This document shows positions 1-61,034 of a stretch of 63,807 nt of DNA, piece by piece. Each line of letters begins with the position of its first letter. Within the stretch, counting starts at the first letter, position 1. The DNA is from Leucoraja erinacea (taxonomy: Eukaryota). The position numbers were made by a program, and so were the translations under genes. Below the pieces are notes generated by a model. It was not told the origin of the DNA. It saw nothing but the letters and a program-made list of their open reading frames with translations, and did no database searches. The stretch spans positions 19,778,194 to 19,842,000 of the forward strand of contig NC_073400.1 in assembly GCF_028641065.1 (NCBI RefSeq), in the 5' to 3' direction.

Positions 1-1147
1 GGACTGTGTGCGGATGTGTGCATGGAGAGGTACATGCAACGATGTAGAGAGAGTCACATATGTAGAGAGTTATAATAATACGGTCCATGAGACAGAGATC
101 AACTGATGCATAGAGACTGGGATAGAGATTCTAATTAAAACAAAATGAAAAAGCAAACAAGTCAGAATGTTGGTACGGAAGAGGTCAGTGCAATGTGTTT
201 CTTCTCTGTATGTATCCTCTGTCACATGCAGAACATGCTGCCTATTACCCTATCACAGGCGGGTCTGAGGAGGAGTCAGTTCCTGATCTTTTCACTTATT
301 TTAAATCTCGCATCGCTGAAACATCACTTCAAGATGTGGCACTTTTCTTTGAGGAGGATCCCCTTCCTACTCTGTGCATCCCTCATCGCCGTCTTTGTAG
401 GTAAGTACAGATATTAATGATCAACTCTGGTTATCGATGGGTATGAGGATTGTGCAGGTTTTCCAACCCATTCAACCCATTGTGGTAATTTCCTGGCTTC
501 ATGCTAGCCCAAATGCTGCCACACTGTCATAAAGGTGGGACACACTGGTCTCTCATTCGGTCCATCTCTCTGTCATTCACAGCCCCTCTTCCATTCTGCT
601 GATGTTATCTTTCTTTATCTCTCTCTCTATCGAAACACTCCTTCTCTCACTGACCCTATTTCTGTGCCTCTTTCTCCAGTTCTGTCACTTTCTGCTGGTT
701 CCTGACATCTCTACAAACCTCTCTGTAGTTAACATTGTATTGCCATTTGTGCCTCGCTATCTCTCTCCCTCCCTCCCTCCCTCCCTCCCTCCCTTCAACA
801 ACCTCCCGCCCTCCACCCATTCCACTACTCTCGCTTTACATCCGCAGTCCAGCTCTATTTTTCACTTCACATACTTCTTGTTCAGCAAAGTGTTCTGAGC
901 CTGAACCACTTCCTGCCACCATTTGATGCAATGTTTGACCAAACACCCTCCCTATCAGAACCAGCTCATTGCACCCTGACAGCAGCTTCTGACTTCTACA
1001 GGGCTCTGGGCATTCAGACTATGAGCTCTGATGGATAACAGTAATGAACCCCAACTCCAAGTGAGATGTCTAATAACAGAATGGCACAACACAGCAGAGA
1101 CAGTTCCTTGCACACACACAAATGGAGGAGGAGGAGGGGGAAGATGA

Positions 1148-1182
<35 letters not shown>

Positions 1183-1610
1183 AAGAGAGAGAAACAAAGA
1201 CAGAGAGAGAGGGGTCAATTTGCAGAAGTTAAAAATTGTGTGTCATTGACAATGAGGAGGAGAATGAAGAACTGAGGAGGAGAAATCTGGTCAGCTGGGC
1301 AGGGAAATGAAGTTTACTCCAGAGAGGTGTGTGGTGAGATGTTTGGAGAAGCAAAACAAGGTTGGGAATACACAATAAATGAACCAGCAAATGGTTGGTG
1401 TTTGGAGAGGTTGAAAGCCAGATAATGTCATAGCACTGGGATGAAGGGCCTGATTTAAGATTCATGGGATCCACAGCGACTTGGACATTCAGATTCAGAA
1501 CTGGCTCACTCATAGAAGGTAGAAGGTTGTGGGGGGAGAGTGTTATTCTGGCTGGAGGTCTGTGACCAATGGAGTTCCAAAAGGATCTGTGTTGGGTGTT
1601 CAATATTATA
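1..1610 (+). repeat. Segmental duplicate block A (upstream region, leader exon, start of intron 1); partner ~40362-42110
   Basis: Long near-identical colinear sequence. This copy has an extra GA-rich insert (~1110-1425); the partner has a CR1 insert. Confidence 0.92.
334..400 (+). CDS. Gene 1 exon 1, signal peptide [22 protein letters not shown](A)
   Basis: AAGATGT start context, hydrophobic 22-mer, donor TAG|GTAAGT at 400/401 in phase 1. Conserved in the paralogous copy at 41148-41208. Confidence 0.85.
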
Positions 1611-4600
1611 TATAATATCTATCTCTCCCTCCTAACCCCATTCTCCTGCCTTTTCACCATAACCTCTAACACCTTTGGTATGGCGATATAAGGAACTGCA
1701 AATGCTGGTTTACCAAAAAAAAGAACCAAAGATATAAAGTGCTGGAGTAACTGCTGTGGGCAGCATCTCTGGAGAACATAGATAGGTGACGTTTTATCTT
1801 GGAACCCTTCCCCCGGACTGATTGTGCTGGGAAGTGGGGTGCGCGGGGATAATGTGGAAAAGAACAGTGGCCAGGCAGAAGAGTTCCCTAATATTGGAGA
1901 ATTCTATGGGTTGTAAGCGACAGATGGAATTTGAGGTGCTATTTCCAGTCTGCATGTAGCCTCATTTTGACAATGGAGGAGGTCCAGGACAGAAAGGCCC
2001 AGGTGATTTAAAAATAGTTAGCAGCCAAGAGATGCAGCAGGCCTTGGCAGACCGAGGGCTAGTGCTCGGTAAAATGGTTGCCGAATCTATGCTTCATCCT
2101 GTTGATGTAAAGGAGGCTACATCATAAACACCAGATGCAGTGGATGAGGCTAGACAAAGTGCAGGTGAACTTGTGTTCAACCAATGAAGGCAAATATTCC
2201 GTATACCTTCACCACCAGATCCACCTATGCTGCCACCTGTAGAGATCCTTGGACCGAGTATATCAAGATCCCTCTGTGTTTCAACACTCATTATGACCCT
2301 ACCATTCTTAATATGTTCTAATTCTATAACTTCCCAAAATGGCAAATTTTGCACTTATTAGAAACAAATTCCACCTGTAATCGCTCTGCCCATTTTAACA
2401 ACTGAACAGAGAGTGGTGAATCTCTGGAATTCTCTGCCACAGAAGGTAGTTGAGGCCAGTTCATTGGCTATATTTTTAAAGGGAGTTAGATGTGGCCCTT
2501 GTGGTTAAAGGTATCAGGGGGTATGGAGAGAAGGCAGGTACAGGATACCGTTGGATGATCAGCCATGATCATATTGAATGGCGGTGCAGGCTCGAAGGGC
2601 AGAATGGCCTACTCTTGCACCTATTTTCTATGTTTCTAACAGTATATTCTACAGTCTATGACCATGTTCCGAACAATGACTCCACTGATTTTTTTTTTGT
2701 GTCATCTGCAAACTTACGAATTAAACATTTTTATTGTACTCGGGCAGTAAGAATCCCAACAACAATCCCTGCAGTACACGACTGGTCACAGGGTTCCAAT
2801 AACAAAACCAACCCTCTACCAATATCTTCTGCCTCCAATCACCCAGATAATTTTGCATCCGATTGGCCAATTTTCCCTGGATCATGTGCTCTCACCTTTT
2901 GATCCAGTTTCTTGTGTGGTATTCAGTCACCCACCTGTCCTTACTTCCTCCTTCAGGGATCTGTGTAAGTGCACTCCAGGGGTCTGCTTCTTTCCAGGGA
3001 TCTGCCCCACCATATTACTCACACCCTACCATTTACCCCGTTCCTCCACCATGTTCACTCTCTCCAAACTCACCCCATCCCCCTTCATTTTCAGACCAGG
3101 TCCCATTTGCCGTGTCTGTTCCCCCTGACCCATCCGTCTATATCTGGCTGCCGGCAGTAACTTCTTTCCTCGGCCCCGGTGCAGAATGTCTTCACTCTGT
3201 TCCCCCCGTGGGCTCACTATGTGATGTAGGAACTGTGGGCCGGGTCTCTAACAGAGCCGGGAGCCAGACGATGGGCCGCATGGCCTACTCCTGTGCTCTG
3301 TGATTCTCCCAGCTCCGTTCCTCCTCCAGTCACCGAGCTCTCCTGCTGACTGCCTCTCTTGTCTCCTCAGCTGGGACTGGGGCCGCCGCTGCCAACGTGA
3401 CCGGAGCTCGGGGACACTCGGTCTCCTTACCTGCTGGGATCACAGCTGCACCGGATGTTGACAGCATTGAGTGGAGCCGGACATCACCCAACACCAAGAT
3501 AGCCAAGTGCTCGGCTGAGACTATTGAATACTATACCATCAACTACACGGGACGGGTAACTCTTCACTGCGGGAACTTCAGTCTGGAAATCCGTGATTTA
3601 CGGAGAGATGACGCTGGTGATTACCAGGTGGATGTTATTACACGTTCAGGAGGTGAAACTCGGGCAAGAGTTCGACTGGAGGTGTACGGTGAGTGAGACT
3701 GCCGCGGAAGCCCCCGGCTCCTGAACACTCCCAATTAATGGGCGAGGGCAGATCCTGTGCATTCCCCAGTTTATTGAACCTCACTGACTGCCAGTGTGCA
3801 GAGTGGGGGTCATGGTCCCAGTGTAGTGCCAGGCTGGGGGACAGACCCATCACATCCCGGACGCTGGGCCGTGAAGCATCGAATCGTGAACGGTTCCCAC
3901 GTTCTCACTGCTCCACGGGGAAGGGAATTTCCTTCAGACTCCCTGGTGAATTTTCTGGATGACACACACACCACCCACATTTGTGGAGGGATGGAATGTT
4001 TAGGGATTGGACAGAGGGACTGCTTGGGGTGGTGGTGCCAGTGCTCAGAGTGGCAGAAGGATGATGTTAGGATGGAGGAGGAAGAGCTTAGGCTGCTGGA
4101 CGGTGGGAGTATTTAGGGAAGTGGGTAGGGATCTGATTAAGCAGCTGCTTCAGTTGTAGGTGATGGCAACTTCTCGAGAGATGTTGGAGCTGCACTCACC
4201 CAGGTATTTGAAGAGTGTTCCCTTAAGTGCCTGTCCCACTTTTGCGACCTTTACAAGCAACTGCTGGGACCCGTGATAGGTTGCCAAAATTTTCAACATG
4301 TTGAAAATTCAGCGGCGACCAGAAAGACACTACGACTCTTTGGAGACCTCTCACGACCATACAGGCGACCCCTGGTGACATGTCGCGGGTGCCCACTCAT
4401 GACCATGGGAGACCGCTCGCGACCGTAGTCGTGAGAGGTCTCCAAAGAGTCGTGGCATCTTTCTGGTCATCGCTGAATTTTCAACATGTTGAAAATGTTG
4501 GCGACCTATCACGGTCGTCAGTCGCCTGTAAAGGTCGTGAAAGTGGGACAGGCGCTTTACACTCCTGACGTGCCATGTAGACGGGGAAAGGTCAGGGTGT

Positions 4601-7600
4601 CAGGAAGTGAGTCACTCCTACGGGATACCCAGCCTCAAACTTTCTCCAATAGCCACAGAGCATGTGTAATTAGTATTGTTGAGTTGCTGTTCCGTTGTTT
4701 TGATGATGTGGGACTTGCTGCTGGGAGAATCATTGAGTCTCAAGCACGGGGCTGTCTCCTGCTGACACTTCCATCACGTGGTTGCAAACTTCCCACTTAT
4801 CAGCCACTGCCTGAATGTTCTCTGGGTCCTGCTGCATGCAGTTGAGTTGATAATGGAACTGAACATTGTGCCATCATCAGTCAAATGTTGCAATGCCAGG
4901 AAGGTAATTGATGAAGCAGCTGGTTGAGCCCAGGACACTGCCCTGTGGGACACCTGCAGTGATGACCTGTGGCTCGGTTGACTGACCTCCAATGACCACA
5001 ACCATCTTCCTCCGTGTGAGGTGTGACTCACGTCAGAGTGTTAACCCCTGGATGTTCATTGATTTTAGTTTTACAAGAGCTCCCTAATGTCACTCAGTCA
5101 AACAATGCGTTGATGTTGAGGACAGTCATCCTCGCCTTATCTCTGCAACTCAGCTTTTCGTTCCACTCTTGGACCAAAGGCCTGATGAGATCTTCAGATA
5201 AGATCTTCAGCTTCAGTGAGCAGGTTATTGGTAATTGCTGTCTGATAGAAGTGTCAACAATAGCTTCTCTCACTTTGCTGGTGATCAAGAGTAGACCAAT
5301 TGGAAGGTGATCAGCTGATTGGATTCATCCTGTTTTTGAACAGCAAACATGAGGGGAATTTTCCACATTGTCACTGGATGCCAATGTTGCAAAAACAACT
5401 TGGCCAGACGTGCCACGACTTCAGGAGTACAGGTCTTCAGTACTATAGCTTGGAAGTTGCCTGGAGCTGGATATGTATAGGGGCTCTCTGCTGTTTCCTG
5501 GATAGACTGGATGCGGAGAATATGTTTCCATTAATGATTGAGTCCAGGACCCGAGGCCATAGCCTCAGAATAAAAGGACATATGGTACTTTTGGGGGACC
5601 AGCGTTATGACAGGCAGTTTGCCACTGCTACACGGGTGGTTTTAAACTGAATAAGGGGGGTGGGGTGTCAAATGGGATAGTCGAGGACGGAGTTAAAGAG
5701 AAAGAGAGTAAAGGGATGGTTAATGACCCCAGAATTAACGGGAAAGGAAGCTCACAAAGGGATAGGAGAGTATGGCCAAGTGTAAGAGGGATCGATGTGA
5801 AAGGTGAGATGTGTTAGGAATTAAAAGTTATTGTATATGAATGTGCGAAGTATAAGGAGTAAAGTAGATGAGCTTGAGGCTCAGTTAGAGTAGCAATGTT
5901 ACAAAATTTTGAGATTTAAAAAATCAAGTCTGTAATTTATCCCATCAGATAAAGCATAAAAAGAAGTTTAATTTGGCACCTAATTCACTTTCATATCTCA
6001 AGTATTTAAAAAGTTATGGCCATTTTCATACTCGGAAATTAGCATCTTGTTCCCTATTGATTTTCTATGGACATAACAAAAAAGCTGTGATCGTGAACAG
6101 TCAAAAGCACATAACCTTCTTAAAAATTAAGAGAACTGAATGAAATTTCAGTTATCATAGATTGAAGCATTCTGAAACAAATATAAAATAATCTTACTCG
6201 GATGACCTGAAATTAAAGCATATAATTAGTTAGTTACCCACTTGTAGCTAATTTCAAACTTCAATTACTAGATCTAAACATCTATCCATTTCTTAATAAA
6301 TGATTAACATTTTTAAATAGCCTAAGTGTCCAAATAATATTCACAAATAATTCACAATAAAACATGATTTTTAAATCTCATTTACATTAATTTATAGGCC
6401 AAATGGAAGGAATTTAGTGTTCAACTGCTGTGAATTAAAGTCCATTTTAAATCCGCTTTCTTGTGGGATCCTGTGAACGCGCTGGTTTAGAACGTTCACA
6501 TTGTGGTAGATTTGTGCTCTCAAATGCCCAGAAAAATACTGCGGGATATAATGGGCCCAAAATTAGCTACTCGCAATATTAAACTTTGTATAAAGTGATC
6601 TTAAGAAGCCCTTTTTAATGTAAAAAAATACTGCTACCCTTCAGATTTCTGCTCTATAGCTGGTTGCGAGCCGTCGGGGGTTTAGAGGTTAATTTTTAAA
6701 CTACTATAGCACTTAGGAAAAACTCGTAAAACTAATAATAGCTCATGTGAGGGAACCTACCAGCGAATTTTCGTTAATAATTAACTAGGCTGAACAAACT
6801 CGATTTGAACAGCCTAGAGAAAATCACGTTTTAAACCCGCCCCCCTCTAAACGGCGCCAAAATCGAGCACACGGGCTGGGACAGATTTTCAGTGACGCTT
6901 CAGGTACGCTTTGCAACATACCTAGTTAGAGGTTGGTAGATATGACATTGTGGAGATTACTGAGACGTGGCTGCAGGTGGATCGAGCCTGGGAACTTAAT
7001 ATTCAGGGTTATACATCCTATAGAAAGGACAGGCAGGTGGGCAGAGGAGGGGGAGTAGCTCGGCTGGTGAGGGATGGAATTCAGTCCCTTGCGAGGGAAG
7101 ACATAGGGACTGACGAGGTAGAAGTCTCATAATTGGTGTCAGGGACAGATACACCTGCCACTGGTAGCCTGGGTGGCCAGGTGGAGGTGCTACCAACCCA
7201 TTCCCATGGTGGACATTGAAATCCCCACCTAGAGGACATTCTGGCCTTTGCTGCTCTCAGGACATTTTCTAAGTGTCGTCCAACATGAGGGAGAGCCAGC
7301 TCATCCGCTGAGGATTGAGGGCAGTGATCAGGAGATTTCCCTGCCCATGTATCTGCTTTCAGTGAGGGTGACTCTGCAACCCCAGATCTCTGCTCTGTCC
7401 CTTTTGACAGTTTCTCCATTCTAACTACTTGGTTCCCCTCTCGGAATGTGTCCCATCACAAGACTGGGAATAACTTACTATTTACACCCCCGATTTGTGA
7501 GCTGTTTCAGTCTCTGTGGGGGAGACGGTGTGGGACCCAGGATCTGCATGGTGCTGGATTCACTCTGGAACATGGCACACTATCCCAGTCTGGGTCTACG

Positions 7601-10600
7601 CCCATCACAGTCCCAGGGCTGACACTCTTGGACCAGGTCCAGGACCGGCCTGGGCTGGGTCACACTCAGGTGCATAAGGGACACAGGGACCATTTGCAGA
7701 ATTGAAAAAAACCCTGCATCTGGATAGAATCTCCAGGTTCAATCATCCGTGATTGAATGGCGGAGTGGATTTGATGGGCCAAATGGTTTAATTCTACTCC
7801 TATCACATGATACAGAGCCATAAACAGGACATGGTGGATAGTTGGTGGATGATTGCGGGCAGTAGTAGTTGGAAAGGGGGCGCATCACGTGTGGACTTTG
7901 TGCAGCAACAACTCGCTGAACTGAAGGGGGGGGGGGGAAAGAGTTAAACTGGTAGGTGGAAATGAGCTGGGATCGGATTAAAGTTCACCTGTGGCTGTTG
8001 GAGACGGGGTGTTGGGTATTGTGGGGCCCACATGGACCTCCTTTACTCATCTTTCTTCTCTCTGCCCCAACCTCAGAGCCCGTGGAAGGAACACAGATTA
8101 AGGCTCAGAACATCACCGGGATCTGCAACCTGACCTGCTCCGTTACCTCAGGCGACCCCACCAGCTTCAGGTGGTGGAGGGGACAAGAACCTCTGGGAAA
8201 TGACAGCACCCACCACGTCTCGCAACATGGAGAGACGGTAGAGGTTCATCACACAGCAGGGGTCGGGGACGTTGAGTACAGATGTGAGGCCAGGAACCTG
8301 GTCAGTGAGGGCACGGCACAGATCCTGCTGACAGACAACTGCAAACAGGCCACATTTGGTGAGAGAAACACACTGCTGATACTGGAAATGTGTAATAAAA
8401 ACAAAAAATATCGGAAACACTCCGAAGATTCTACATCCAATGATATGAGAGAAAGATAAACAACAGTCCAGTTCGAAGATTTTATGTCAGCAATTGGAAA
8501 CGTTAGAAATCAAATGTATTTTATGTGACAGAGGTGGAATCGGAAATACAAAGAGAATGCCAATGATAGCGACAGAGAGACACACATAACAGAGGCGATG
8601 GTGGTGCTGGCTGAGAGATGGTGAATACTTGTTTTCTGTACAGAACCTGATTGTAGAAGGTGCAATTACGAGATGAATTACAGAAGAGAGAAAACAATCC
8701 ATGCTGGAACTGTAGGATTCCAAACTTTTATTCAACATCACGCTGAACAGACCTGCAAGCTTAGGTGTGTCCAAAATACAAAAAGAGAAATAGCAATTAG
8801 AATCTACACGAAATAAGTTAGCTCCAAAGAGAGAGTCACTGAGGGAAGAGATGTGTCTTAGGGCACTTTGTTACAAATAAGAAAGAACAGAAACTAATGA
8901 AGGTGCACTGTTAATAGATTTCCATAAAGCATTTGATGGAGATGTTCCATCAAAAGTTATTGAAGAAAATAAAAGCTTGTAGGTCAGCAGGATTTGTGTT
9001 GGAATGAACAGAAGGCTGGCAGGATAACAGGTAACAGAGTAGGTATAAATGAACAACATATAATATTGCCATAGGGCTTGTTCTGGAGCCTCCACTAGTA
9101 TATGAATTTTAACATGGCTCGTGTAAAAGGCCCAAAATGTAGGAAAGTAAGATATGAAGTGGACATAAGGTAATTATTAAAGGATAATAAGGCAAGATAA
9201 GTGAGCGGGCAAGGATCTAACAAATGTAGAATAACATGGTAAATTGTTTAATAACAAAGAAGCACATTACCCAACTAGTAAGTGATTGCAGTCATAACGT
9301 CATACAGACGTTAGGTCAAAGACTATGACTGAAGACGAGTCTTCAACCTAAAATGTTAACTGTTTCTCTTGCCACAGATGCGGCCTGACCTTCTAACTAT
9401 TTTCAGCATTTTTGGTTTTTACTTAAGAATGCAGCTGGAACTGAACAATTTAAGGCCCTCTTTAATCCTGCTTGATGTGTGTTTATAATGTCTCTCAAGC
9501 TCTGCTGACCCAGCAAGGGAGTAAATAAAATAATATTTACGTGTGTTGTTCACATAGGGAGAAAATAAAGCCATATTTGTGAATATAACATTGTCGTGTT
9601 TATCTCCACCTGGTGCTGCTTCATGTCCTCTGCGCTCCTCAGTAAACCAGGGTTGACCCCCCTCGGTGACAGGAATGGTGGCGTGAACCATGAGGTTACA
9701 GTCTGCGTGGTGGACAGTTCTGCTGCTGTCCACAGGAACGCATAGACCCCAGTTGTCAGCTGCATGATCTATTCTGAGCCTCTCCCACTGAGCTCAATTG
9801 TAGGTGCCACACAATATGATGGGGATGAGCCTTTGGTGTGAAGACCAGACTTGTCTCCACAAGGACTGTACAGTGATAAGTCTCATCATTGGTGTCAGGG
9901 ACAGATGCACCTGCCACTGGTAGCCTGGGGATGGCCAGGTCAGGCCAGATTATCCCTGGTCGCAGCCCACCATGGCCCGCTGTCCCTCAGGAGTTGGAGG
10001 CTCAGTCTGTGGAGGTGCTACCAACCCACTCCCATGTTGGACATTGAAATCCCCACCTAGAGGACGTTCTGGCCTTTGCTGGTCTCAGGACGCATTCTAA
10101 GTGTGGTCCAACATGGGGTAGAGCTAGTTCATCTGCTGAGGATGGGGGGGGGGGGGGGCAGTGATCAGGAGATTTCCCTGCCCATGTATCTGCTTTCAGT
10201 GAGGGTGACTCTGCAGCCCCAGATCTCTGCTCTGTCCATTTTGACATTTTTTCATTCTGACAACTTGGTTCCCCTCTCAGAATGTGTCCCATCACAAGAC
10301 TGGGAACAACTTGCTATTTACACCCCCGATTTGTGAGCTGTTTCAGTCTCTGTGGGGGAGACGGTGTGTGACCCAGGATCTGCATGGTGCTGGATTCACT
10401 CTGGAACATGGCACACTATCCCAGTCTGGGTCTGTGCTCATCACAGTCACAGGGCTGACACTCTTGGATCAGGTTCAGGACCGGTCTGGGCTGGGTCACA
10501 CTCAGGTGCACAAGGGACGCAGGGACCTTTTGAGGAAGTGAAAAAAAACCCTGCGCCTGGAGAGAATCCCCAGGTTCAATCATCCATGATTGAATGGTGG

Positions 10601-13366
10601 AGTAGATTTGATGGGCCAAATGGTTTAATTCAACTCCTATCACTTAAGATACAGAGCCATAAGCAGGACATGGTGGAGAGTTGGTGGATGTGAAGAGGGC
10701 GCATCACGTGTGGACTTCTCACAGCAACAACTCGCTGAACTGAGGGGGGGGGGGGGGGGGCAGGGAAGAGTTAAACTGGTGGGTGGAAATTAGCTGGGAG
10801 TGGCTTAATGTTGACGTGGCTCTTGGAGCCGGGGTGTTGGGTATCGTGGGGTCCACAAGGATCTCCTTTACTCATCTTTCTTCTCTCTACCCCATCCTCA
10901 GAGCCCGTGACAGGAACACAGATTAAGATTCAGAACATCACCGGGATTTGCAAGCTGACCTGCTCCGTGACCTCTGGCGACCCCACCAGCTTCAGGTGGT
11001 GGAGGGGAGGAGAACCTCTGGGAAACGGCACCATCCATCGCCCCCGGCGACACGGAGAGACGATAGAGGTTCATCACACAGCAGGGGTCGGGGACGTTGA
11101 GTACAAGTGTGAGGCCAGCAACCTGGTCAGTGAGGGCACGGCCCAGATCTGGCTGACGGACGACTGCAAACAGGCCACATCGGGTGAGTGAAACACACTG
11201 CTGATTTTGGAAATATGCAATAAAAACAGAAGATATTGGAAATGCTCCAACGGTTCAAAAGCCAATGATATGAGAGAAAGATAACCAACATTCCAGGTCG
11301 ATGATTTTATGTCAGAAATTGGAAAAATTAGAAATCAAATGTATTTTATGTGACAGAAAGGTGGAATCGGAAATACTGAGAGAATGCCAATGATAGCGAC
11401 AGAGAGACACACACATAACAGAGGCGATGGTGATGCTGGCTGAGAGATGGTGAATACTTGTTTTCTGTACAGAACCTGGCTGTAGAAGGTGCAAATAGGA
11501 GATGAATTACAGAAGAGAGAAAGAAATCCATGCTGGAACTGTAGGATTCCAAACTTTTATTCAACATCATGCTGAACAGACCTGAAAGCTTGGGTGGGTC
11601 CAAAATACAAAAAGTGAAATTGCAATTTGAATCTATGTGAAATAAGTTAGCTCCAGAGAGAATCACTGAGGGAAGAAATGTGTCTTAGGGCACTTTGTTA
11701 CAAACAAGAAGGAACAGAAACTAATGAAGGTGCACTGTTATTAGATTTCCATAAGGCATTTCATGGAGATGTTCCATCAAACGTTATTGAAGAAAATAAA
11801 AGCTTGTAGTGCAGCAGAATTTGTGTTGGAGTGAACAGAAGACTGGCAGGATAACAGGAAACAGAGTAGGCATAAATGAACAACATATAATATTGCCAAA
11901 GGGCTCGTTCTGGAGCCTCCACCAGTATATGAATTTTAACATGACTCGTGTAAAAGGCCCAAAACGTAGGAAAGTAAGTTATGAATGAGCATAAGGTAAT
12001 TATTAAAGGCTAATAAGGCAAGTTAAGTGAGCGGGCAAGGATCTAACAAATGTAGAATAATGTGGGTAACATGTTCAGACTGAAGAAGGGTTTCGATCCG
12101 AAATGTTGCCTAATTCCTTCGCTCCATAGATGTTGCCTAACCCGCTGAGTTTCTCCAGGATTTTTGTCTACATTTGATTTTCCAGCCTCTACAGTTCCTT
12201 CTTAAACATACATATAACTACAATCAAGCTATACACAATCAAAAGAAAAATACCGGAATGCAGAATATATATTTGCAGCATTGTAATGTTAGTTTCAAAG
12301 AAAAAGTCCAATGTTGGCAATGTGGTAGATTGCAAGATCAGGATTATACCTGGCTTATGGGTGGACCATTCAGTAGTTTGACTCCTGAGTTAGAGTCCTG
12401 AGGCTGGTAGTGTGTGGTTGTAAATGTTTGTATAGTCTGCCCAATGGGACCAGTACTTGATCCATAGCTTTCTAGCCTTGGAAATGTATGCCCTTGCCCA
12501 GAGGCTTTAATACTGTGAGAATATTTGCCCCACCACCTTCTTAGGGAGTGTGTTTCAGATTTTGTCTGCCCTCCAGGCGAAACAAATCTTCCACAGATCC
12601 TCTATAACCTTTCACTACTCTCCTTAAATATATATCTTCTATTAGAAAAATCTATTCACACTACAGGACTCAAAATTAACGATTGCCTGGGTGCCATTGA
12701 CCACTCAAAGCGCCGCCAGGCAACCAAACACCGAGTCATTTTACCCGGCTTGGCAACCAGATACTGGTTTGTACCAAAGATAGACACAAAAAACTGGAGT
12801 AACTCAGCATGTCAGGCAGCATCTCAGGAGAAAGGGAACGAGACGTTTTGTGTCGGCGGTGACGGCTGTATTGCGTGAGAAAGATACTAGGTGTGTGGTG
12901 ACGAAGGGTCGAAGCGAATGACGGGCACCGAACAGCGGCTCCATCTCCTCCTCCTCCCGCACCCCGCCCGCCCTGATAGCGGCCGCTACTTGCAAATGCG
13001 CTAACGGCGCTTAAAAAAAACCACTCCCGCACGCCGAGGTTGGGAGGAGGGAGGGAGGAGGCCTCGGCATGCGGGAGGGTTTGTTTTGAAAGCGGTTATC
13101 GCCGTTAGCAGGTTTGCAAGCAGCGGCCGCTATCAGGGAGGAGGAGGAGATGGAGCTGCTGCCGCTGCTGTGCAGGACCCGTCATTCGCTCCGACACTTC
13201 TGAAGCAGCTGCACCAAAGATACTATAACTATAGGATCTTCGAGCTGCACAGCTCGGCCCCGTTGGCCGGCGGAGGAGGGAGGCGGTGGCAAGGAATTCC
13301 CAATGGCCTAAGCAGCGGGACTATGTTGTCCGAGGAGCGCTGACCTTCCTTCCCCCAACTCGCCCC

Positions 13367-13413
<47 letters not shown>

Positions 13414-17971: not shown

Positions 17972-18264
17972 GTCAGGTGTTGACCATACTCCACCCTGGA
18001 TCCAAGGGCATGTACTTATCTCTGGACAGATGTTCCCGTGGTGTTGGGATGGAGAGGATCCCACTAACCTCAGCCCATCGGCAGCAGTGGGTGTGGATAG
18101 GTGGGAGAGCTACAGTAATATGGGTGGAGGTGGGATGGGTTGGAAAGGATGGGTGGGGAGGGTAAGGATGGGATCTTGGGGTTCCATGACACACAGTTGG
18201 GAAAAGTGATCACCTGTGGTTAGTGAGTGTGCACAACTGTGGGACTGGACCAGGCTGAACTGTT

Positions 18265-30330: not shown

Positions 30331-30334
30331 GCAG

Positions 30335-40509: not shown

Positions 40510-40988
40510 GTGAGGTTATCCCTGGGATGTCAGGAATTTCATATGAAGAAAGAGTGGATAGACTCGGTTTGTACTCGCTAGAATTTAGAAGATTGAGGGG
40601 GGATCTTATAGAAACATACAAAATTCTTAAGGGGTTGGACAGGCTAGATGCAGGAAGATTGTTCCCAATGTTGGGGAAGTCCAGAACAAGGGGTCACAGT
40701 TTAAGAATAAAGGGGAAACCTTTTAGAACCGAGATGAGGAAAACATTTTTCACACAGAGAGTGGTGAATCTCTGGAATTCTCTCCCGCAGAAGGTAGTTG
40801 AGGCCAGTTTATTGACTATATTTAAGAGGGAGTTAGATGTGGCCCTTGTGGCTAAAGTGATCAGGGGGTATGGAGAGAAGGCAGGTACAGGATACTGAGT
40901 TGGATGATCAGACATGATCATATTGAATGGCGATGCAGGCTCGAATGGCCGAATGGCCTACTCCTGCACCTATTTTCTATGTTTCTAT
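40510..40988 (+). mobile_element. CR1 3' insertion with GGAAG TSD, absent from the paralogous block
   Basis: GGAAG at 40505-40509 and 40989-40993; the empty site is TACGGAAGAGGTC near 174-186. Confidence 0.9.
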
Positions 40989-41147
40989 GGAAGAGGTCAG
41001 TGCAATGTGTTTCTTCTCTGTATGTATCCTATGTCACATGCAGAACATGCTGCCTATTACCCTATCACAGGCGGGTCTGAGGAGGAGTCAGTTCCTGATC
41101 TTTTCACTCTTATTATAAATCTCGCAGCGCTGAAACATCACTTCAAG

Positions 41148-41208
41148 ATGTTTTCTTTGAGGAGGATCCCCTTCCTACTCTGTGCATCCCTCATCGGCAT
41201 CTGTGTAG
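41148..41208 (+). CDS. Gene 2 exon 1, signal peptide [20 protein letters not shown](A)
   Basis: Paralog of 334-400 with an in-frame 6-nt deletion. Donor TAG|GTAAGT intact, phase 1. Confidence 0.8.
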
Positions 41209-50200: not shown

Positions 50201-52309
50201 AATGTAGAATAATGTGGGTAACATGTTCAGACTGAAGAAGGGTTTCGACCCGAAACGTTGCCTATTTCCTTCGCTCTGTAGATGCTGCCTCACCTGCAAA
50301 GTTTCTCCAGCATTTTTGTCTACCTTCCATTTTCTAGCATCTGCAGTTCCTTCTTAAACATACATGTAACTACAATCAAGCTATACACAAGCAAAAAGAA
50401 AAATTCCAGAATGCAGAATATATTTTTGCAGCATTGTAATGTTAGTTTCAAAGTTATTGTAATGTTAGTTTCATTTACAAATCTTCCACAGATCCTCTAT
50501 AACCTTTCACTACTCTCCTTAAATATATATCTTCTATTAGAAAAATCTATTCACACTACAGGGCTCAAAATTAACGGTTGCCTGGGTGCCATTGACCACT
50601 CAAAGCGCCGCCGGGCAACTAAACACCGAGTCATTTTGCCCGGCTTGGCAACCTATTCATACTATCTCCCCTATCTAAGTCCCCCATGATGTGGTGCATT
50701 TATAACAGCACTCCTCCACTCTCAGCCACCACCACTCTAAAGAAAACAAACCCAACCAATCCAGTCTCCCCTCATAACTGAAACACTCAATCCCAGACAA
50801 CATTTTGATGAATCTCCTCTGCATTGCTCCAGTGAAATAGAAACATAGAAAATAGGTGCGGGAGTATGCCATTCGGCCCTTCGAGCCTGAACCGCCATTC
50901 TGTACGCTTTCCAACTTAATGGCATATCTCCTATTTCATGTTGACCAAAATTGAACTCAATACTCCAAGTGTGGTTTCATCACAGTTTTGTACAACTGCA
51001 AAATATGATCATGGCTGATCATCCAACTCACACCCTTTCTCTAGTGTGATGGCCAGAATTGTACACAATATATTCCAGCTGTGGCTTAATCAATGTATTA
51101 TAACATTGATCTCTGGAGGGTCTCGTACGACAGAGGGACTGAGTACAAGTACATAGTTCCCTGAAAATAACATCACAGGTTGACAGGGTGGTGAAGAAGG
51201 CTTTTGACATGCTGCCGTTTATCAGTATAGGCATTCAATATAAAAGTTGGGATGCTATGTTGCAGTTGTACAAAACTGTGATGAAGCCACAATTAGGGGT
51301 ATTGAGTTCAATTTTGGTCAACATGAAATAGGAGATATGCCATTAAGTTGGAAAGCGTACAGAACAATGTACAAGGATGTTGACATGACAGTGAGAGGTT
51401 GAGCTGGCTAGTACTTTATTTCTTGGAGAGTAGAATGCTGAGTGATCTTACAGAGATGTATAAAATCACGTATAGCAGAGATAGGGTGAACATTGCCTTT
51501 TCTCCAGGGCTTTAGAATCAAGAACTAGAAGTCATAACTTTAATGTGCGAGGGGAAAGATTTAGTGGAAAAGTTTGGGGCAATGTTTTCCACACAGAAGG
51601 TGGTACATAAATGGAATGTGCAACCTGATGAAGTGGTTGCAGTGGGTACCATAACAAAATTTAAAATACAATAAAGTCTATCTTCTATCCTTATCTCACA
51701 CCTTTTGTCTTCTCTAATTTCAGGTAGTCCTTGGTTTCTCCCTCCTTCCCCTCCCATTCCCAGCTCTCCCACAGCGTACTATCTCCGCCTCTTCCTTTCT
51801 TTTTCGTGCGCCCCACCCCACCCCCCCCCCGACATCAATCTGAAGAAGGGTCTCGACGTGAAACGTCGTCACTTCCTTCGCTCCATAGATGCTGCCTTAC
51901 CCGCTGATTTTCTCCAGCAACTCCCTGGTCAATTTGTCCCTTCCCACCCAATCCACCCCCTCTCCTGGCACTTTCCCAGGCAACCGCAGGAAATGCTACA
52001 TTTGTCGCTTTACCTCCCCCCTTGACTCCATTCAAGGACCCAAGCAGTCTTTCCAGGTGCGGGAGAGGTTCACCTGCACCTCCTCCAACCTCATCTATTG
52101 CATCCAATGCTCTAGGTGGCAGCTGCTCTACATCGGTGAGACCAAGCGTATCTTCAGTTTAAACCAGCATCTGCAGTTCCTTCCTACACACACGATAACA
52201 CGATACTATAAGATTGAACTTTATTAATCCCAGGAGGGAAACTGTGTGTATATATATATTATACACACGCGTACACACGCACGCACACGCAAATACACAC
52301 ATCTTATCT

Positions 52310-55300: not shown

Positions 55301-58300
55301 TGTTTTTGCTACCAAAGTTGATAACCTCACATTTATCCACATTAAACTGCATCTGCCATGCATCAGCCTACTCACTCAACCTATCCAAGTCACCCTACAT
55401 TCTCATCTGTCATCTGCAAATTTGCTAATGTTACTTTGAATCCCTTCATCTAAATCATTGATGTATATAGTAAAAAGCTATTAAAGAACAACAGAAGGTA
55501 ACTAAAAAGGCAATATCGTGAAAAAATATAAAGAGTAAGAAAGAGGCAAGAGTGGAAGTTGGATCACTGGAGAATGATGCAGGAGAAGTGACAATGGGGA
55601 ATAAAGAAATAGCAGAGGAGTTAAATAACTTTTTTGCGTCAGTCTACACAGTGGGAGACACCAGCAATGTCCCTGAAATTCAAGAGAGCCAGGGGTTGGA
55701 AGTTAGTGGGGTGGTTATTACGAGGCAGATGGTGCTTGGGAAACTGAAAAGGCTGAAGTCACCTGGACCAGATGGACTGTACCCTAGTCTTCTGAAAGAG
55801 GCGGCTTTAGTGATTGTGGAGGTATTGACAGTGATATTTCATAAGTTCATAGGTTATAGGAGTAGAATTAGGCCATTCGGCCCATCGAGTTTACTCCACC
55901 ACTCAATCATGATTGATCTCTGCCTCCTAATCTACAATTTTACTTTTTTTTCAAGAATCACTAGAGACAGGAGAGGTCCTAGATGATTGGAAAGTTGCCA
56001 ATATTACCCTATTGCACAAGAAGAAGCAAAGCAGAATAGTGGGATCTATAGGTCGGTTAATCTGACTTTGGTCTAAAATCTTGGTAAGATTTTAGAGTCC
56101 ATTATAAAAGATGAGGTTACAGAGTACTTAGAAGTTCACGATAAAATAGGTCAAAGTCAGCATGGCTTTGTGAAGGGGAGGTCTTGCTTGACAAATTTGC
56201 TGGAATTCTTTGAAGAAGTAAATAGGAGGACAGACAAAGAGTCAGTAGATGTTATTTACTTAGATTTTCAAAAAGCCTTTGATAAGGTGCCACACGTGAG
56301 ACTGATAAGGAAGTCGAGAGCCCACGGTATCAAAGGGCAGATACTAGCATGGATAGCAGGTTGGCTGCATGGCAGAAGACAAAAAGTGGCAATAAAAGGT
56401 TTTTTTTCTGGTTGGCAGCCAGTGACTAGTGACGTTCCGTAGGGGTCGATGCTGAGGCCGCTACTCTTCAAGTTGTATATGAATGATTTGGACGAGGGGA
56501 TTGAAGGCTTTGTGGCCAAGTTTGTGGATGATATGAAAATAAGTGGAAGGTCAGGTAGTGCAGAGAAAGCAAAGAGTCTGCAGAAGGGCTTGGGATTGTG
56601 GGCAGACAAGTGGCAGATGGAATATAGTGTAGCAAAGTGTGGAATGATGCATTTTGTTCAGAGGAATAAAGGTGCAGACTATTTTCTAAATAGGGAGAGA
56701 ATCCAGAAATCGGAGGTGCATGATGGTCGGTGTGGACTCGGTGGGCTGAAGGGCCTGTTTCTACACTGTATCTCTAAACTAAACTTCTATAAGATGTATA
56801 TTATACAGATCATCCTCGTGCTCCAAAGAATAAAGTCCTAGCCTGCCCAAACTCTCCCTATAGCGTTGGCCCTCACGTCCTGGCCACATTCTTGTAAATC
56901 TTCCCTGTACTCTTTCCAGCCGAACAGCATCCTTCCTGTAGCAGGGTGACCAAACCTGAACTCCATTAACCATTCGTCAGCTCACCTGCCCAACTAATCA
57001 AGATCCTACTACAATATGTGACCCAGGATCTGCACGTGCTGGATTCACTCTGGAACACAGCACGCTACCCAGTCTGGGTCTGTGTCCGTCACAGTCCCAG
57101 GGCTGCCACTGTTGGCCAGGTTCTGGGCCGGTCTGAGTTGGGTCACACTCAGGTTTTTAAGGAACACTGGGACCACTCACAAGTGACAAAAGATATGGAA
57201 CTGGAGAGATTCCCAGGGAACAGAGCCATAAACAGGACACAGTGGAGAGTTTGTGGATGGGTGCAGGGAGTGTTCGGGAAGGGGGCACATCACACGTGTG
57301 GACTTGACGTGTGGGAAATGACATCACCCATCACCTCGTGGGACATGGAAAGACAATACAGGTTCATCACACAGCAGAGGTCGGGGACGTTGTGTACAGG
57401 TGCGAGGCCAGGAACCAGGTCAGTGAAGGCACGGCACAGATCCGGTTGAAGGACGTCTGCAAACAGACCACATCTGGTGAGTGTCAGAGGGCGAATCAGG
57501 TTTGAAGAATGTGGTGGTTTAATTGTTCATTGAGACAGTGCAGAGGGAGCTTCACATTTTGTTTTCCCTTCCAAGGACTTTATTCAGTAATTGCATATTA
57601 CAGTGTACCAGAAAGTACAAAAATGTTCAAGTCACATTGCATCAGGCAATCATCATAAAACACTAATGGCATCTTTACAATGCATTCATTGTAAAGATGC
57701 GGAAGGTCATTGTTCACGGAAGGCCACCAGAGTCCCCGTGGACACCACATGTTCCCTCTCCAGGGACACAATGGGAGCCAACAAAGAGCCATTGATCTTG
57801 ACAAGGCACTCTGCAGCAGTGTTCTATCCATGCTCTGTGAGTGTGTAAATGGACAGCGCTGTCACAGTTATTTGATGTCAGTCTACAGTGCGGGCCCCGA
57901 GTTCTTGCTGAGTTTGTGAACAAGGCCCAGTGCAGTCTCTCTGATGAGTGATCCCCTCTTCTTTCACCAGGGTTGAGTAGCTGTCTCTGTGGATGTTGGT
58001 TGAGGGCCACGGTCGTAGCCGTCCTGCTTCTGATTCTCATCTCAGTCACTGTCGCCACCCACATCATCAGTGAGTGCTGTTTTTAAGTGTTTGCAGTTAA
58101 AATGTAGAAACAATGAACTGCAGCCATTGTTTAATTCAGAAAAGGTCACAAAGTGCTGGAGTAGCTGCAGCAAGGAAACAGGTTCGCTTGGACATCTCCG
58201 AACTCTCCCTACCGTTTCTGAATATCACCGTCTCCATCACAGGAGACAGACTATTGACCGACATCTACTACTAACCTACTGACTCCCATAGATATCTAGA

Positions 58301-61034
58301 CTACACTTCTTCCCACCCTGCTTCCTGAAAAGACTGTCATCTACTCCCAATTCCTTCATCTATGCTGCATCTGCACCCAGGACGAGGCTTTCCATGATCA
58401 TCGGAGATGTCCTCATTCTATAGGAAACGGAATTTCGACTCTTCCATTATAGATGAGGCTCCCACTAGGGTCTCCTCGATATCCCGCAGCTCTGCTCTTG
58501 CTCCCCATTCGCAACAAGGAAAGAGTCCCACTTGGCCTCACCTTCCACCCCACCAGCCGTTGCATACAACATATAATCCTCCAACACTTTCACCACCTCC
58601 AACGGGATCCCACTACTGGCAACATCTTCCCATCTCCACCCCTTTCTGCTTTCTGCAGACACCCTTTCCTCCGTAACTCCCTAGTCAACTCGGCCCTTCC
58701 CACTCAAACCACCTTCTCCCCAGGTACTTTCCCCTGTAACTGCAGGAGATGCAACACCTGTCCCTATACCTCCCCCTTCAACTCCATCCAAGGACCCCAA
58801 CAGTCATTTCAGGTGAGGCAGGGGTTCACTTGCACCTCCTCCAACCTCATCTATGGTATCCGCTGTTCCAGGTATCAACTTCTGTACATCGGTGAGACCA
58901 AGCGCAGGCTCAGCGATCGTTTCGCTGAACACCTCCGTTCAGTTGCCTTAACCTGCCTGATCTCCCGGTTGCTCAGCAGTTTAACTCACCCTCCCATTCC
59001 CAATCTGACCTTTCGGTCCTGGGCCTCCTCCATTCTTAGAGTGAGTCCTAGCGCAAATTGGAGGAACAGCACCTCATATTTTGCTTGGGTAGCTTACACC
59101 CCAGCGGTATGAATATTGACATCAAATAGCCCTTGCTTTCCCGATCTTTCTATCCCCGCTCCCTTCCCAGTTCTCCCATCTCTTACTGTCTCCGACTACA
59201 TTCTATCCCTGTCCCGCCCACTGCCCTGCCAGCAATCTGAAGAAGAGTCTCGACCGGAAACATCACCCATTCCTTCTCTCCAGAGATACTGCCTGTCCCG
59301 CTGAGTTACTCCAGCATTTTGTGTCTACCTTAGGCTCAAGGATCCGACTAGTAGAACAGAAAAAGGCTCACTCATCTGTTTAGTTACAAATTTGTTTTTT
59401 TGGCAAGAGAGAACAAAAAGAACACTTGTCTCGGTATGCCCAGGGTCCAGTTTTACAGCAGCACACATCTCTCTCTCTCTCTGCCTCCATCTGCGGCGCT
59501 GATCGCGTCTCAGCCCGTCGGAGAACCGCTCTCGTACATGAACTTGAAAATTTCTCATATAACATTCCACCCCTTGAACAATCTGGTTACCGTCACATCC
59601 GGCCCACAGGCTTTACCTCGTCACATCCGGCCCACAGGCTTTAGTAAAGTCCACACGGTCGCACATAGAAGGCTGTAATATTATAGCCAACAAGATTGTC
59701 CCAATGGTCAGTTCCCAGTGCACCACTGTTGTCCACCAGCCTCCAAACATCCCGAAAGGCCACCATCCTCCCGGGAGATTGTAGTCATGGTACTGTTCTC
59801 CGACCCTTCCCCATGGCTTCCAGGATGTGGTCAGCGAGGATGGTGATGTTCTCTTTTACCTCACTCAGTGTCAAACCAGTCACTAAGTCTGTATGACCAC
59901 GCATGGTATAAATTAACCTGTTTTGTCAGAGGTCCCAAACTTTAATGTCATCAATACCATCAGAGATTATCTGATCGCTGTGTCATTAAACGTTGCTGCC
60001 AGTACCTGGCACGTGTTTTGAAACATATGGATTGCAGCCTTCTTCTGAATGTCCTATAGTTTAATTGTCTCGTCATTGCTTCCTGTACAGCCGTTGTGCT
60101 GGATAACATGAATTCAGAAAGGATGTGTGACCTTTAAGACCCTTGATTCGTTCACCCGTTTCATTATCTCACCGTCACACTGACCACTCCGAGCTCACTG
60201 AGTCCACACCGTCACACTGACCACTCAGCCACAGCGCCATGGGTCACAGACTGTTCAGGGAAATTCTCGTATAACAGTAGCTCAGCAGTTCAAGAAGCAT
60301 CTCTGGGGAACATGGATAGGCGGGTTTCTGCTCGATATCCTTGATTGTAGGGGCAGGAGAAAAAGGGTGGAAACGGGAATGGCAGGACAAAGCATGGCAG
60401 GTAAAAGATTGACAAAGGCGGGAGAGGGTGGTTGTTGATAGGCAGATGGTTAAAACAGAGGCCAGAGATAAGAAAGGAAGGTGAGAGACAGGTTTAAGAG
60501 CTCCAGCTTGTGAAGCCAGATGGGGATAATTAGTAAGTGGTGACCTAAAAATGGAGAATTTAATATTTATTTCACTGGTTTTTTTGAGCTATCCACATGG
60601 AATACGAGGTGGTCCTCCATTTAGTGTATGGCCTCACTCTGACAATGGACGAGGCCTAGGACAGAAAAGTAAGTGTGGGAATGGGGAGGGGAGTTAAAAT
60701 GATAGCAAATGGGAAATACAGTTGGCATTGGCGGACCAACCGTAACTGTTCATTGAAACAGACAATGAGTCCATGCTTGGCCTGCCCAGTGTACAGGAGG
60801 CTATGTTGGGAAAACTGGATGTAGTAATAGAGGTTAGAGGAGGTGCATGTGAACGTCTTTCTCAGCTGGAAGGAATGCTAGGGTCACTGGATAGAGGCGA
60901 GGGTGACGGTAAACGGACAGGTGTTTCATCTCATGTGGACTCTCGTAGGGTGCACTGACTTCTCTCCTATCTCTCTCCCCACAGGCGCCCGCCCTGTCAG
61001 TGGAACTGCAGACAGGCCTCACAAGACTGAATGA
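41148..61034 (+). CDS. Gene 2: CD2/SLAM-like protein, leader-IgV-(half C2)-TM-short Tyr-free tail; join(41148-41208,47710-48051,[49533-49748],57971-58069,60985-61034), 255 aa or 183 aa if the half-C2 exon is skipped; may be a decaying pseudogene
   Basis: All exons have AG/GT ends and compatible phases (768 nt, or 552 nt without the half-C2 exon). No intact C2 exon found. Confidence 0.65.
42410..44480 (+). repeat. ~2 kb G/A-rich polypurine low-complexity tract
   Basis: Almost only G and A on the + strand, with one ~110 bp interruption duplicated at ~44500-44615. Confidence 0.95.
44500..44850 (-). mobile_element. Helitron-like 5' end on the minus strand
   Basis: Reverse complement TCTTCTATTATATATTAAAAGTCTGTG matches the Helitron-like start at ~52392; it also shares CCAATCGGAAT. 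Confidence 0.5.
44880..46430 (-). mobile_element. Rex1/Babar-type LINE RT fragment
   Basis: [69 protein letters not shown]. Confidence 0.9.
47710..48051 (+). CDS. Gene 2 exon 2, CD2/SLAM-type IgV domain with no cysteines
   Basis: CTCTCCCAG acceptor, G|GTCAGT donor, 342 nt, phase 1-1. [50 protein letters not shown]. Confidence 0.9.
48438..48465 (-). ncRNA. Minimal hammerhead-ribozyme-like motif in a Penelope terminal repeat
   Basis: Reverse complement CTGAAGA-A-GGGT-TTCG-GCCC-GAAACGTC: core boxes, stem II, palindromic ACGT stem III and GUC site. Stem I is weak. Confidence 0.5.
49244..49340 (+). pseudogene. Degenerate N-terminal part of an IgC2 exon
   Basis: Good acceptor CTTTTCCCTGCAG followed by AG-CCG-GTG (EPV-like), then stops and frameshifts. 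Part of a ~290 bp tandem duplicate of the 49533 exon region. Confidence 0.55.
49533..49748 (+). CDS. In-frame but internally deleted IgC2 exon (C-terminal half only)
   Basis: CCCTGCAG acceptor, CAG|GTAGGT donor, 216 nt, phase 1-1. Retains [15 protein letters not shown] but lacks the B-strand Cys and C-strand Trp. Confidence 0.6.
50162..51710 (+). repeat. Paralog of gene 1 post-C2 intron (12010-12300, 12580-12760, 14754-15600)
   Basis: Colinear near-identical text. The hAT-like element is reduced to about 95 bp here. Confidence 0.88.
50232..50259 (+). ncRNA. Minimal hammerhead-ribozyme-like motif
   Basis: CTGAAGA-A-GGGT-TTCG-ACCC-GAAACGTT; stem I is not evident. Confidence 0.45.
51835..52195 (+). 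mobile_element. Penelope-like element fragments (terminal repeat and GIY-YIG piece)
   Basis: [27 protein letters not shown] flanked by the CTGAAGAAGGG terminal repeat. Confidence 0.85.
52308..52395 (+). repeat. (TCTA)n microsatellite
   Basis: Direct reading; it abuts the Helitron-like 5' end. Confidence 0.98.
53768..54010 (+). repeat. 47-bp minisatellite, ~5 copies
   Basis: Unit TGGTGGTTTGGGTGCTTTGGCTTGAAGTTAAAAGGCACTACTGCAAA. Confidence 0.92.
54390..54690 (+). repeat. 48-bp minisatellite, ~6 copies
   Basis: Unit GAAATGGTATGAAACTGCACTTGAATTTGGTGGCCTTGCACCCTGCTT. Confidence 0.92.
54912..55445 (-). mobile_element. CR1 RT fragment
   Basis: [31 protein letters not shown]; [11 protein letters not shown]. 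Confidence 0.88.
55490..56720 (+). mobile_element. CR1 RT fragment
   Basis: [38 protein letters not shown]. Confidence 0.9.
57311..57476 (+). pseudogene. 5'-deleted gene-1-type IgC2 exon remnant
   Basis: [55 protein letters not shown] with donor G|GTGAGT. The acceptor and first half are deleted (upstream intron homology jumps from GTGTGGACTT to GGGAAATGAC). Confidence 0.85.
57971..58069 (+). CDS. Gene 2 transmembrane exon ([33 protein letters not shown])
   Basis: CTTCTTTCACCAG acceptor, A|GTGAGT donor, 99 nt, phase 1-1, hydrophobic stretch. Confidence 0.8.
58195..59330 (+). mobile_element. Penelope-like element 3' part (RT C-terminus, Zn-finger linker, GIY-YIG, terminal repeat)
   Basis: [44 protein letters not shown], followed by the CTGAAGA..GAAAC repeat. 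Confidence 0.9.
60985..61034 (+). CDS. Gene 2 probable terminal exon, short tail [16 protein letters not shown]
   Basis: Strong pyrimidine tract ending CCCCACAG at 60984, phase-compatible with the TM exon, TGA at 61032-61034. Confidence 0.6.

Follow-up and report, generated by a model that had tools for sequence, protein, structure and literature searches.

A SLAM-family reading frame of probable three-gene origin beside an ITSM-bearing receptor gene in the little skate

Mammalian receptors of the SLAM family signal through SAP-type SH2 adaptors. Among their relatives, CD48 and one form of CD58 are linked to glycosylphosphatidylinositol (GPI), and SLAMF8 and SLAMF9 have short tails and no charged residue in the transmembrane (TM) segment. 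The CD2/SLAM family of Xenopus is expanded and includes members with NxxR-type TM segments; according to PMC4536121, which cites Guselnikov et al. 2011 (Immunogenetics 63:679), an arginine in the outer TM segment is a mark of FcR-gamma-coupled receptors. Here we analyze a 63,807-bp stretch of the genome of the little skate, Leucoraja erinacea (the window). It carries gene 1 (334–17971, + strand), whose tail contains an immunoreceptor tyrosine-based switch motif (ITSM), and, further downstream, a chain of leader, V (V2), C2, TM, and tail exons that we call gene 2. An initial annotation of this DNA had proposed that the control region of gene 1 was put in front of an old ectodomain by recent duplication or conversion, giving an ITSM receptor that is co-expressed with a tyrosine-free ligand or decoy. 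Comparison with Amblyraja radiata and other rays leads us to a different reading. Judged from the homologies of its exons, gene 2 is very probably a mosaic drawn from three gene lineages, and on balance we favor the view that it is a relic or marginal transcript of birth-and-death exon shuffling, non-functional or barely expressed. The best explanation of the window as a whole is a fast-turnover (birth-and-death) SLAM/CD2-family cluster.

Exon origins of gene 2

The exons of gene 2 read as one open reading frame (ORF) of 255 amino acids (aa) because all of them are phase 1. Their splice sites are canonical AG/GT, and the frame also stays open, at 183 aa, when the damaged C2 exon described below is skipped. 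The spliced ORF confirms that the tail contains no tyrosine. The exons are incongruent in origin: the leader is of the gene 1 type, V2 and its C2 exon are SLAMF6-like, and the TM and tail exons belong to a short-tailed subfamily. Gene 2 is thus not a simple whole-gene duplicate, as had been noted initially.

Searches with the V2 ORF returned two proteins only, the NCBI model over this region (P0001) and an A. radiata protein named 'SLAM family member 6-like' (P0002, 298 aa). V2 and the V exon of gene 1 (V1) are alignable across only 53 residues, with 41% identity, in keeping with the earlier description of them as barely alignable. The A. radiata locus of P0002 (L001, on the reverse strand at 21.89–21.92 Mb) shows colinearity to the window solely over 46395–49851 and lies ~0.57 Mb from the A. 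radiata ortholog of gene 1, on the opposite strand. Within this segment the V2 and C2 exons of P0002 use the same splice sites as those of the window, and the flanking introns are 96–98% identical. Unlike the window, P0002 combines a leader of its own (MSIPCGGLLLWLMSA) with an undamaged C2 domain that keeps both Cys, a separate TM segment, and an ITSM tail (ETVYATV); no homologs of its leader, TM, or tail exons were found when the window was searched. Intron identity between the V2 segment and L001 (95.8–98.0%) equals that of orthologous DNA elsewhere, indicating that the fragment is a relocated ortholog or a copy made at about the time the two species split. The idea that an old ectodomain simply gained a control region does not hold: what is present is a 3.4 kb piece of a SLAMF6-like gene, stripped of the leader, TM, and ITSM exons of that gene and carrying a crippled C2 exon.

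The damage to this C2 exon is extensive. Relative to A. radiata, ~15 codons are frame-shifted between the first and the third of four deletions, and the B-strand Cys and the A and B strands are lost. The reading frame is still open because the deletions total 60 bp. The 71 residues encoded by 49533–49748 gave no Ig match in Pfam, and the fragment does not encode an intact V-C2 ectodomain, although V2 itself is intact. In the damaged exon the sequence GCCTGCACGGTGTG, whose normal place is around the Cys of the F strand, stands a second time where the ancestral B-strand sequence should be (49556–49575 and 49670–49690); a minor templated or slippage event may have produced it along with the deletions.

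The V2 exon is 94.4% identical to its A. radiata counterpart, from which it differs by 15 nonsynonymous and 4 synonymous changes. Two sequence sets (X1 and X4) could be used to polarize these changes; they represent low-coverage genomic DNA of relatives (~98% and 95.5% identical), since their contigs cover introns. At 11 of 13 sites that differ from window V2, this DNA or the reads of an RNA run (X14) carry the A. radiata letter, indicating that the V2 changes are derived in the window copy. If X1 is assumed to be orthologous, at least 11 changes in 342 bp exceed the expectation, with a Poisson P of ~0.0008 at ~1% neutral change per lineage and of 0.08 at 2%. V1 is likewise 91.8% identical to its A. 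radiata counterpart, with flanking introns at ~95.5%. The greater divergence of both V exons than of their flanking introns suggests diversifying selection, or conversion, acting on the V domains of the cluster.

The leader of gene 2 lies in a second copy of the upstream region, leader, and intron start of gene 1, a repeated block of 1.1–1.4 kb. Self-comparison of the window matched 167–1113 with 40979–41914 at 92.7% and 1418–1614 with 41914–42113 at 91% (E = 0), which substantiates the near-identical copy described initially. Without gaps, the two blocks are 95.9% identical across the first ~700 bp. The gene 1 block has ~300 additional bases between the two matching stretches, and a weaker match (74%) extends upstream between 1–181 and 40362–40509. 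The second leader exon (type 2) is set apart from that of gene 1 by an in-frame 6-bp deletion and GGCATCTGT, with 4 substitutions in all, and both exons retain the donor G/GTAAGT. An interspersed repeat interrupts the second block ~170 bp before its ATG; the corresponding site in A. radiata is empty.

This duplication is not recent. In A. radiata a second leader block is located 9.3 kb downstream of the gene 1 ortholog, after homologs of window 37775–40509, as in the little skate, and its leader has the same 6-bp deletion and a GICV ending. In a tree built from ~700 bp and rooted with Rhinoraja, the type-1 blocks of the two species pair (0.96), as do the type-2 blocks (0.93); among the informative sites, 11 favor orthology, 5 favor within-species similarity, and none favors the cross pairing. 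The orthologous position and the tree grouping together place the leader-block duplication before the Leucoraja/Amblyraja split. Judging by the 5 within-species sites, some gene conversion between the blocks is possible. The comparison with the A. radiata gene 1 locus (L004) covers only the first ~660 bp of block 2.

A further A. radiata model, XP_032898521.1 (P0010), joins a type-2 leader to gene-1-like V and C2 domains. Its leader differs from the L004 copy by two residues and may represent a further type-2 leader copy in A. radiata, although we treat this model with caution given its gene range of 361 kb. In both blocks an upstream ATG (window 210–296 and 41022–41207) opens an ORF that begins MYP[LM]SHAEHAAYYPITGGSEEESVPDLFT. 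In block 2, as in the A. radiata model, this ORF continues into the leader without a change of frame, and in block 1 it is out of frame owing to a 2-bp difference; in A. radiata it is probably 5' untranslated sequence that was translated by NCBI.

A short-tailed subfamily with an arginine in the TM segment

The 3' end of gene 2 derives from a third type of gene. Its half C2, TM, and tail exons are 87%, 94%, and 100% identical to those of the A. radiata 'Ly-9-like' protein P0161, so that the TM and tail exons described initially are real and conserved. Other short-tailed examples are found in Rhinoraja (P0160, P0166), Hemitrygon (XP_072886340.1, P0016; P0170), Mobula (P0168, P0179), and Pristis (P0175). 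Normal members comprise an MD-type leader, a gene-1-like V exon, and a full C2 exon. None of these lies upstream of the half C2 in the window: no MD-type leader was found when the window was searched, although such leaders are present in the A. radiata and Rhinoraja units, and the gene-1-like V exon that precedes C2 in the A. radiata units is missing. The half C2 exon is of the gene 1 type and is the third such exon in the window. A hint in one comparison that the tail exon might be a C2 relic in another frame failed at the DNA level.

The features of the TM segment and tail are shared widely. An Arg in the outer TM segment is kept in 8/8 ray sequences and is replaced by Lys in the basking shark, and a His near the inner end of the TM segment is invariant. 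The subfamily tail follows the pattern S[RH]PGTG..RLHKAE (P0161, P0160, P0166, P0170, P0168, P0175, P0179, and P0196). Annotated isoforms include two that skip the TM exon (P0174, P0181) and one, from the stingray (P0016), that skips the C2 exon to give V-TM-tail. The position three before the TM Arg is a Cys in all ray sequences (motif C-[W/R]-L-R), so these genes do not carry the exact NxxR motif. They do combine a short tail that lacks signaling tyrosines with a TM segment whose outer third holds a basic residue, as is characteristic of receptors coupled to adaptors that contain an immunoreceptor tyrosine-based activation motif (ITAM). This arrangement suggests an activating receptor that is coupled to an adaptor, and not a ligand or decoy, and the short-tailed subfamily looks like an activating, adaptor-coupled partner of the ITSM genes. 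The initial assignment of a ligand or decoy nature to gene 2 is accordingly at odds with its tyrosine-free TM and tail exons, which come from a third gene type conserved across rays. A literature search on SLAM genes in cartilaginous fish returned nothing relevant and no paper on a short-tailed subfamily with a TM Arg.

Gene 1 and the surrounding cluster

Gene 1 is an intact, working-looking SLAM-family receptor with an ITSM, as first described. Its seven-exon chain is open and encodes 463 aa, or 369 aa with either C2 exon alone. The V1 domain scores 26.5 bits against the Receptor_2B4 profile (cutoff 21) and has no B/F-strand Cys pair. The C2 exons carry the two Cys pairs characteristic of the family (C-x-L-T-C ... 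Y-x-C ... C). They lie in cassettes (7181–9248 and 10009–12075) that are 89% identical, and both copies are open and splice-competent. All three tail motifs reported initially, TIYAQP, TIYDTV, and EYETV, are present at the given positions of the + strand. Only TIYDTV is a canonical ITSM (T-x-Y-x-x-[V/I]). TIYAQP is a near-ITSM with Pro at +3, a position occupied by Val in Rhinoraja and Pristis relatives, and QEYETV lacks the Thr at −2 and so falls outside the consensus. By analogy with mammalian SLAM receptors, gene 1 presumably signals via SAP-type SH2 adaptors.

The ortholog of gene 1 is the A. radiata SLAMF5-like gene (XP_032898511.1, P0225; minor isoform XP_032898512.1, P0217), which lies on the forward strand at 22.47–22.49 Mb. 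This locus (L004) and window 1–18264 are colinear, with ungapped intron identity of 95–97%. The A. radiata proteins and Rhinoraja longicauda XP_078277103.1 (P0216) resemble gene 1 in their MWH-type leader, V, C2, and TM segments (IIIISVVAACVAVCIIFLVCFIVRRR); the exon order is kept, and the tails contain TIYAQP or TIYAQV, TIYDTV, and EYETV. C2 exons occur as a tandem pair in the little skate gene and as one cassette in the A. radiata locus; the Rhinoraja model P0011 has two C2 domains. P0011 reads through the GC donor of the TM exon (compare window 16298/16299) and ends in KYLIPSP, and it may have been truncated by the annotation pipeline.

Annotation of the window is sparse. The span 28465–58146 (29,682 bp) is 100% identical to L. 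erinacea GCA_028641065.1 CM054030.1:19806658–19836339, which confirms the cartilaginous fish host suspected initially. Within this span NCBI calls a single gene, LOC129708542 (XP_055510318.1, the P0001 of the V2 search). Its 215-aa product joins an intergenic ORF at 38.4–38.6 kb (38369–38641) to a V2 read-through (47580–48143) that crosses both V2 splice sites, and the model is probably a misprediction. No NCBI annotation covers the second leader, the second C2 exon, or the TM exon (window up to 58.1 kb), and no L. erinacea protein for gene 1 was present among the little skate proteins returned by our protein searches. Beyond what the initial annotation reported, the locus contains the damaged 72-codon C2 exon, the half-deleted third gene-1-type C2 exon, the upstream repeat with its target-site duplication, and the non-canonical TIYAQP (Table 1).

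Protein searches gave 294 matches at E ≤ 1e-3, the best ray and shark proteins being named SLAMF5-, SLAMF6-, SLAMF8-, SLAMF9-, Ly-9-, CD48-, or 2B4-like; these NCBI '-like' names are automatic. In A. radiata the SLAM cluster spans 21.9–22.8 Mb. Rhinoraja (L006, CM130186.1:20373196–20420014, and L005) carries the complete gene-1-type unit in at least two tandem copies; these are separated by ~125 kb, and short genes with MD-type leaders lie in the interval. Cluster layout is different in each of the three skates (L. erinacea, A. radiata, and Rhinoraja). In the AT-rich intergenic region 22238–25809, three long ORFs of 706, 295, and 195 aa resemble endonuclease and reverse transcriptase; a long interspersed nuclear element of fairly recent age is the most likely source. 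In addition to the large satellite listed in Table 1, a smaller G-rich satellite is located at 47.1–47.6 kb and is absent from a DNA contig of a relative (X4 record 12).

Table 1. Features of the L. erinacea window (positions within the window; L and P numbers denote loci and proteins used for comparison).
Feature	Position	Strand	Observations
Leader block 1: upstream region, 5' untranslated region, leader exon, and intron 1 start of gene 1	1–1618	+	Matches block 2; A. radiata L004 9792–11476 at 87% with gaps
Gene 1 exon 1, leader	334–400	+	Phase 1 donor G/GTAAGT
Gene 1 V exon (V1), V-set without canonical Cys pair	3371–3688	+	Pfam V-set 2.9e-12, Receptor_2B4 8e-6
Gene 1 C2 exon a	8077–8358	+	Part of tandem cassette
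Gene 1 C2 exon b, tandem duplicate	10902–11183	+	A. radiata ortholog has a single cassette
Gene 1 TM exon	16161–16298	+	GC donor AG/GCAAGT (GC-AG intron); same splice implied by A. radiata P0217
Gene 1 cytoplasmic exon with TIYAQP	16749–16837	+	Motif at 16766–16783
Gene 1 last exon, TIYDTV, EYETV, and stop	17756–17971	+	Motifs at 17789–17806 and 17882–17896; 90.5% identity to P0217 tail
Interspersed repeat, 469 bp, within block 2 upstream region	40510–40978		~15-bp target-site duplication (ATGTTGGTACGGAAG / ATGTTTCTATGGAAG)
Leader block 2	40979–42113	+	Continues beyond the repeat at 40362–40509
Type-2 leader exon	41148–41208	+	Intact donor G/GTAAGT
G-rich (GGA/GGG) satellite, 2.2 kb	42400–44620		GC skew 0.88 and self-matches; within putative intron, after leader block 2
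Segment colinear with A. radiata SLAMF6-like gene (L001 11544–14272)	46395–49851	+	3.4 kb; high-copy repeats at both ends (repeat depth)
V2 exon	47710–48051	+	89% aa identity to A. radiata P0002; Pfam V-set 8.7e-7
C2 exon of SLAMF6-like fragment, 72 codons, ORF open	49533–49748	+	Deletions of 11, 3, 22, and 24 bp relative to A. radiata
3' part of short-tailed SLAM unit	55526–63807	+	Colinear, 91–97%, with 3' parts of at least three tandem A. radiata units (L002, L003)
Half C2 exon, gene-1 type	57311–57481	+	~290-bp deletion took the acceptor and 5' half; in-frame stop just upstream
TM exon with conserved Arg and His	57971–58069	+	Matches P0161/P0160
Tail exon and stop, 16 aa, no Tyr	60985–61034	+	Identical to A. 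radiata P0161 tail

Competing explanations and comparison with known receptors

The mosaic would have three components. One is a second copy of the leader module, already in place before the Leucoraja/Amblyraja split. Another is a repeat-flanked 3.4 kb fragment with the V2 and C2 exons of a SLAMF6-like ITSM receptor, minus its own leader, TM, and ITSM exons. The third is the 3' end of a member of the short-tailed, Arg-in-TM subfamily (half C2, TM, and tail), its own MD-type leader and V exon missing. We infer, rather than observe, both the order of the rearrangements and the non-functional status of the mosaic.

RNA reads were compared over 44701–50700. One run (X10) gave ~0 reads on V2 and C2 and X14 gave 1–3, in a weak comparison, uninformative rather than negative, that covered ~5% of each run, with tissues unspecified and no positive control. 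The X14 reads over the second half of V2 have 6–10 mismatches and may therefore stem from another copy or allele; the few V2-like reads are confined to the exon. A search of sequencing runs with the V1 exon matched no run, and so no gene 1-expressing control was available for this comparison.

Our preferred explanation, which we hold with reservations, is that the mosaic is non-functional or barely expressed. It is the damaged C2, the halved C2, the repeat in the upstream region, the missing gene model, and the lack of reads, taken together, that make this the most likely status. Some losses could mark a pseudogene: the V2 gene no longer has its original leader, TM, and tail, a stretch within its C2 is frame-shifted, and the second C2 is halved and has no acceptor; yet the chimeric ORF is open.

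A number of observations weigh against this explanation. The chimeric ORF is not only fully open but has good AG/GT sites, and the four C2 deletions add up to a length that keeps the frame. V2 has changed faster than its own introns, mostly by derived and nonsynonymous substitutions, which plain decay would not predict and which is the same pattern as in the seemingly functional V1. The A. radiata sequence compared at block 2 ends ~660 bp into the block, short of the exons that follow. Finally, the RNA comparison was made in unspecified tissues and had no positive control, and it did include a few exon-confined V2-like reads.

A second explanation is that gene 2 is a working chimeric gene made by exon shuffling, in which the V domain of a SLAMF6-like receptor is carried on an Arg-containing TM segment and short tail, the shortened C2 serving as a stalk or being absent. 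Its product would be an activating-type counterpart coupled to an ITAM adaptor and driven by a gene-1-type leader and promoter. Both the 255-aa ORF and the C2-skipped 183-aa ORF are intact, and the C2-less V-TM-tail form has an annotated counterpart in the stingray. Rays in general conserve the tail and the TM Arg, which is a Lys in the basking shark; the rapid, largely nonsynonymous change of V2 is lineage-specific, and X14 holds a few exon-confined reads. Such a gene, however, would have a C2 exon that has lost its A and B strands and one Cys, as well as an upstream region split by a repeat. The mosaic has no gene model, the V2 search gave only two NCBI models and no further V2-containing protein, and the mismatched RNA reads may belong to another copy or allele. 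We therefore consider a working chimera possible but doubtful. A stronger version, that the mosaic is expressed as a new activating-type receptor just made by shuffling and that elasmobranch SLAM genes form true ITSM/adaptor-coupled pairs, we regard as unlikely.

The explanation first proposed, a recent duplication or conversion that yielded an ITSM receptor and its co-expressed ligand or decoy, fares considerably worse. The shared block is real, the tail lacks Tyr, and the 5 sites that favor within-species similarity would allow some conversion. Against this, block 2 is orthologous between genera and hence not recent, the C2 exon is damaged, and the scant V2 reads of X10 and X14 do not demonstrate co-expression. 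A third gene type, itself conserved, is the source of the tail and the charged TM segment, unlike GPI-linked CD48 and CD58 or SLAMF8 and SLAMF9. Gene 1 thus probably does not have a co-expressed ligand or decoy in the mosaic, and we judge the proposal as a whole to be very improbable. We give equally little credence to the possibility that the assembly is misjoined here or represents a private structural haplotype, so that the three pieces would not be adjacent in most little skates: the junctions do lie in high-copy repeats and the order is strongly unlike that of A. radiata and Rhinoraja, but the window is free of N, the segment is continuous in the deposited chromosome, DNA contigs of relatives span 46461–48714 colinearly, and no read-level sign of a misjoin was obtained.

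The locus provides a clean, datable case of how phase-1 Ig exons of three receptor genes can be joined into a new ORF, and it is by such joining that immune receptors paired as activating and inhibitory forms are believed to arise. With the mosaic, a known kind of process in a known family gains a further example, and there is nothing unusual about gene 1 within a family for which NCBI annotation already exists in several rays. For annotation, our results mean that LOC129708542 is probably wrong, and the little skate proteins recovered did not include gene 1. If the mosaic were expressed, the locus would catch the birth of a new receptor pair in the act. The more interesting by-product is the conserved, short-tailed elasmobranch SLAM subfamily with an Arg in the TM segment. 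If its members couple to ITAM adaptors, paired SLAM signaling would be old in jawed vertebrates and not a peculiarity of Xenopus.

Like the short-tailed skate genes, CD48, CD58, SLAMF8, and SLAMF9 have a V-C2 ectodomain and no ITSM. They differ from the skate genes in their membrane attachment, which is by GPI in CD48 and one form of CD58 and by an uncharged TM segment in SLAMF8 and SLAMF9; this comparison follows established descriptions of these proteins and makes no claim of orthology. The contrast between ITSM-bearing members and short-tailed members with a TM Arg is the one seen in paired activating and inhibitory receptor families in general. It is also found, according to PMC4536121, in the CD2/SLAM expansion of Xenopus, where some members have ITSM tails and others have short tails and an outer-TM Arg. 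The motif around this residue is C-[W/R]-L-R in skates and N-x-x-R in Xenopus (PMC4536121), and coupling of the skate receptors to an adaptor is predicted.

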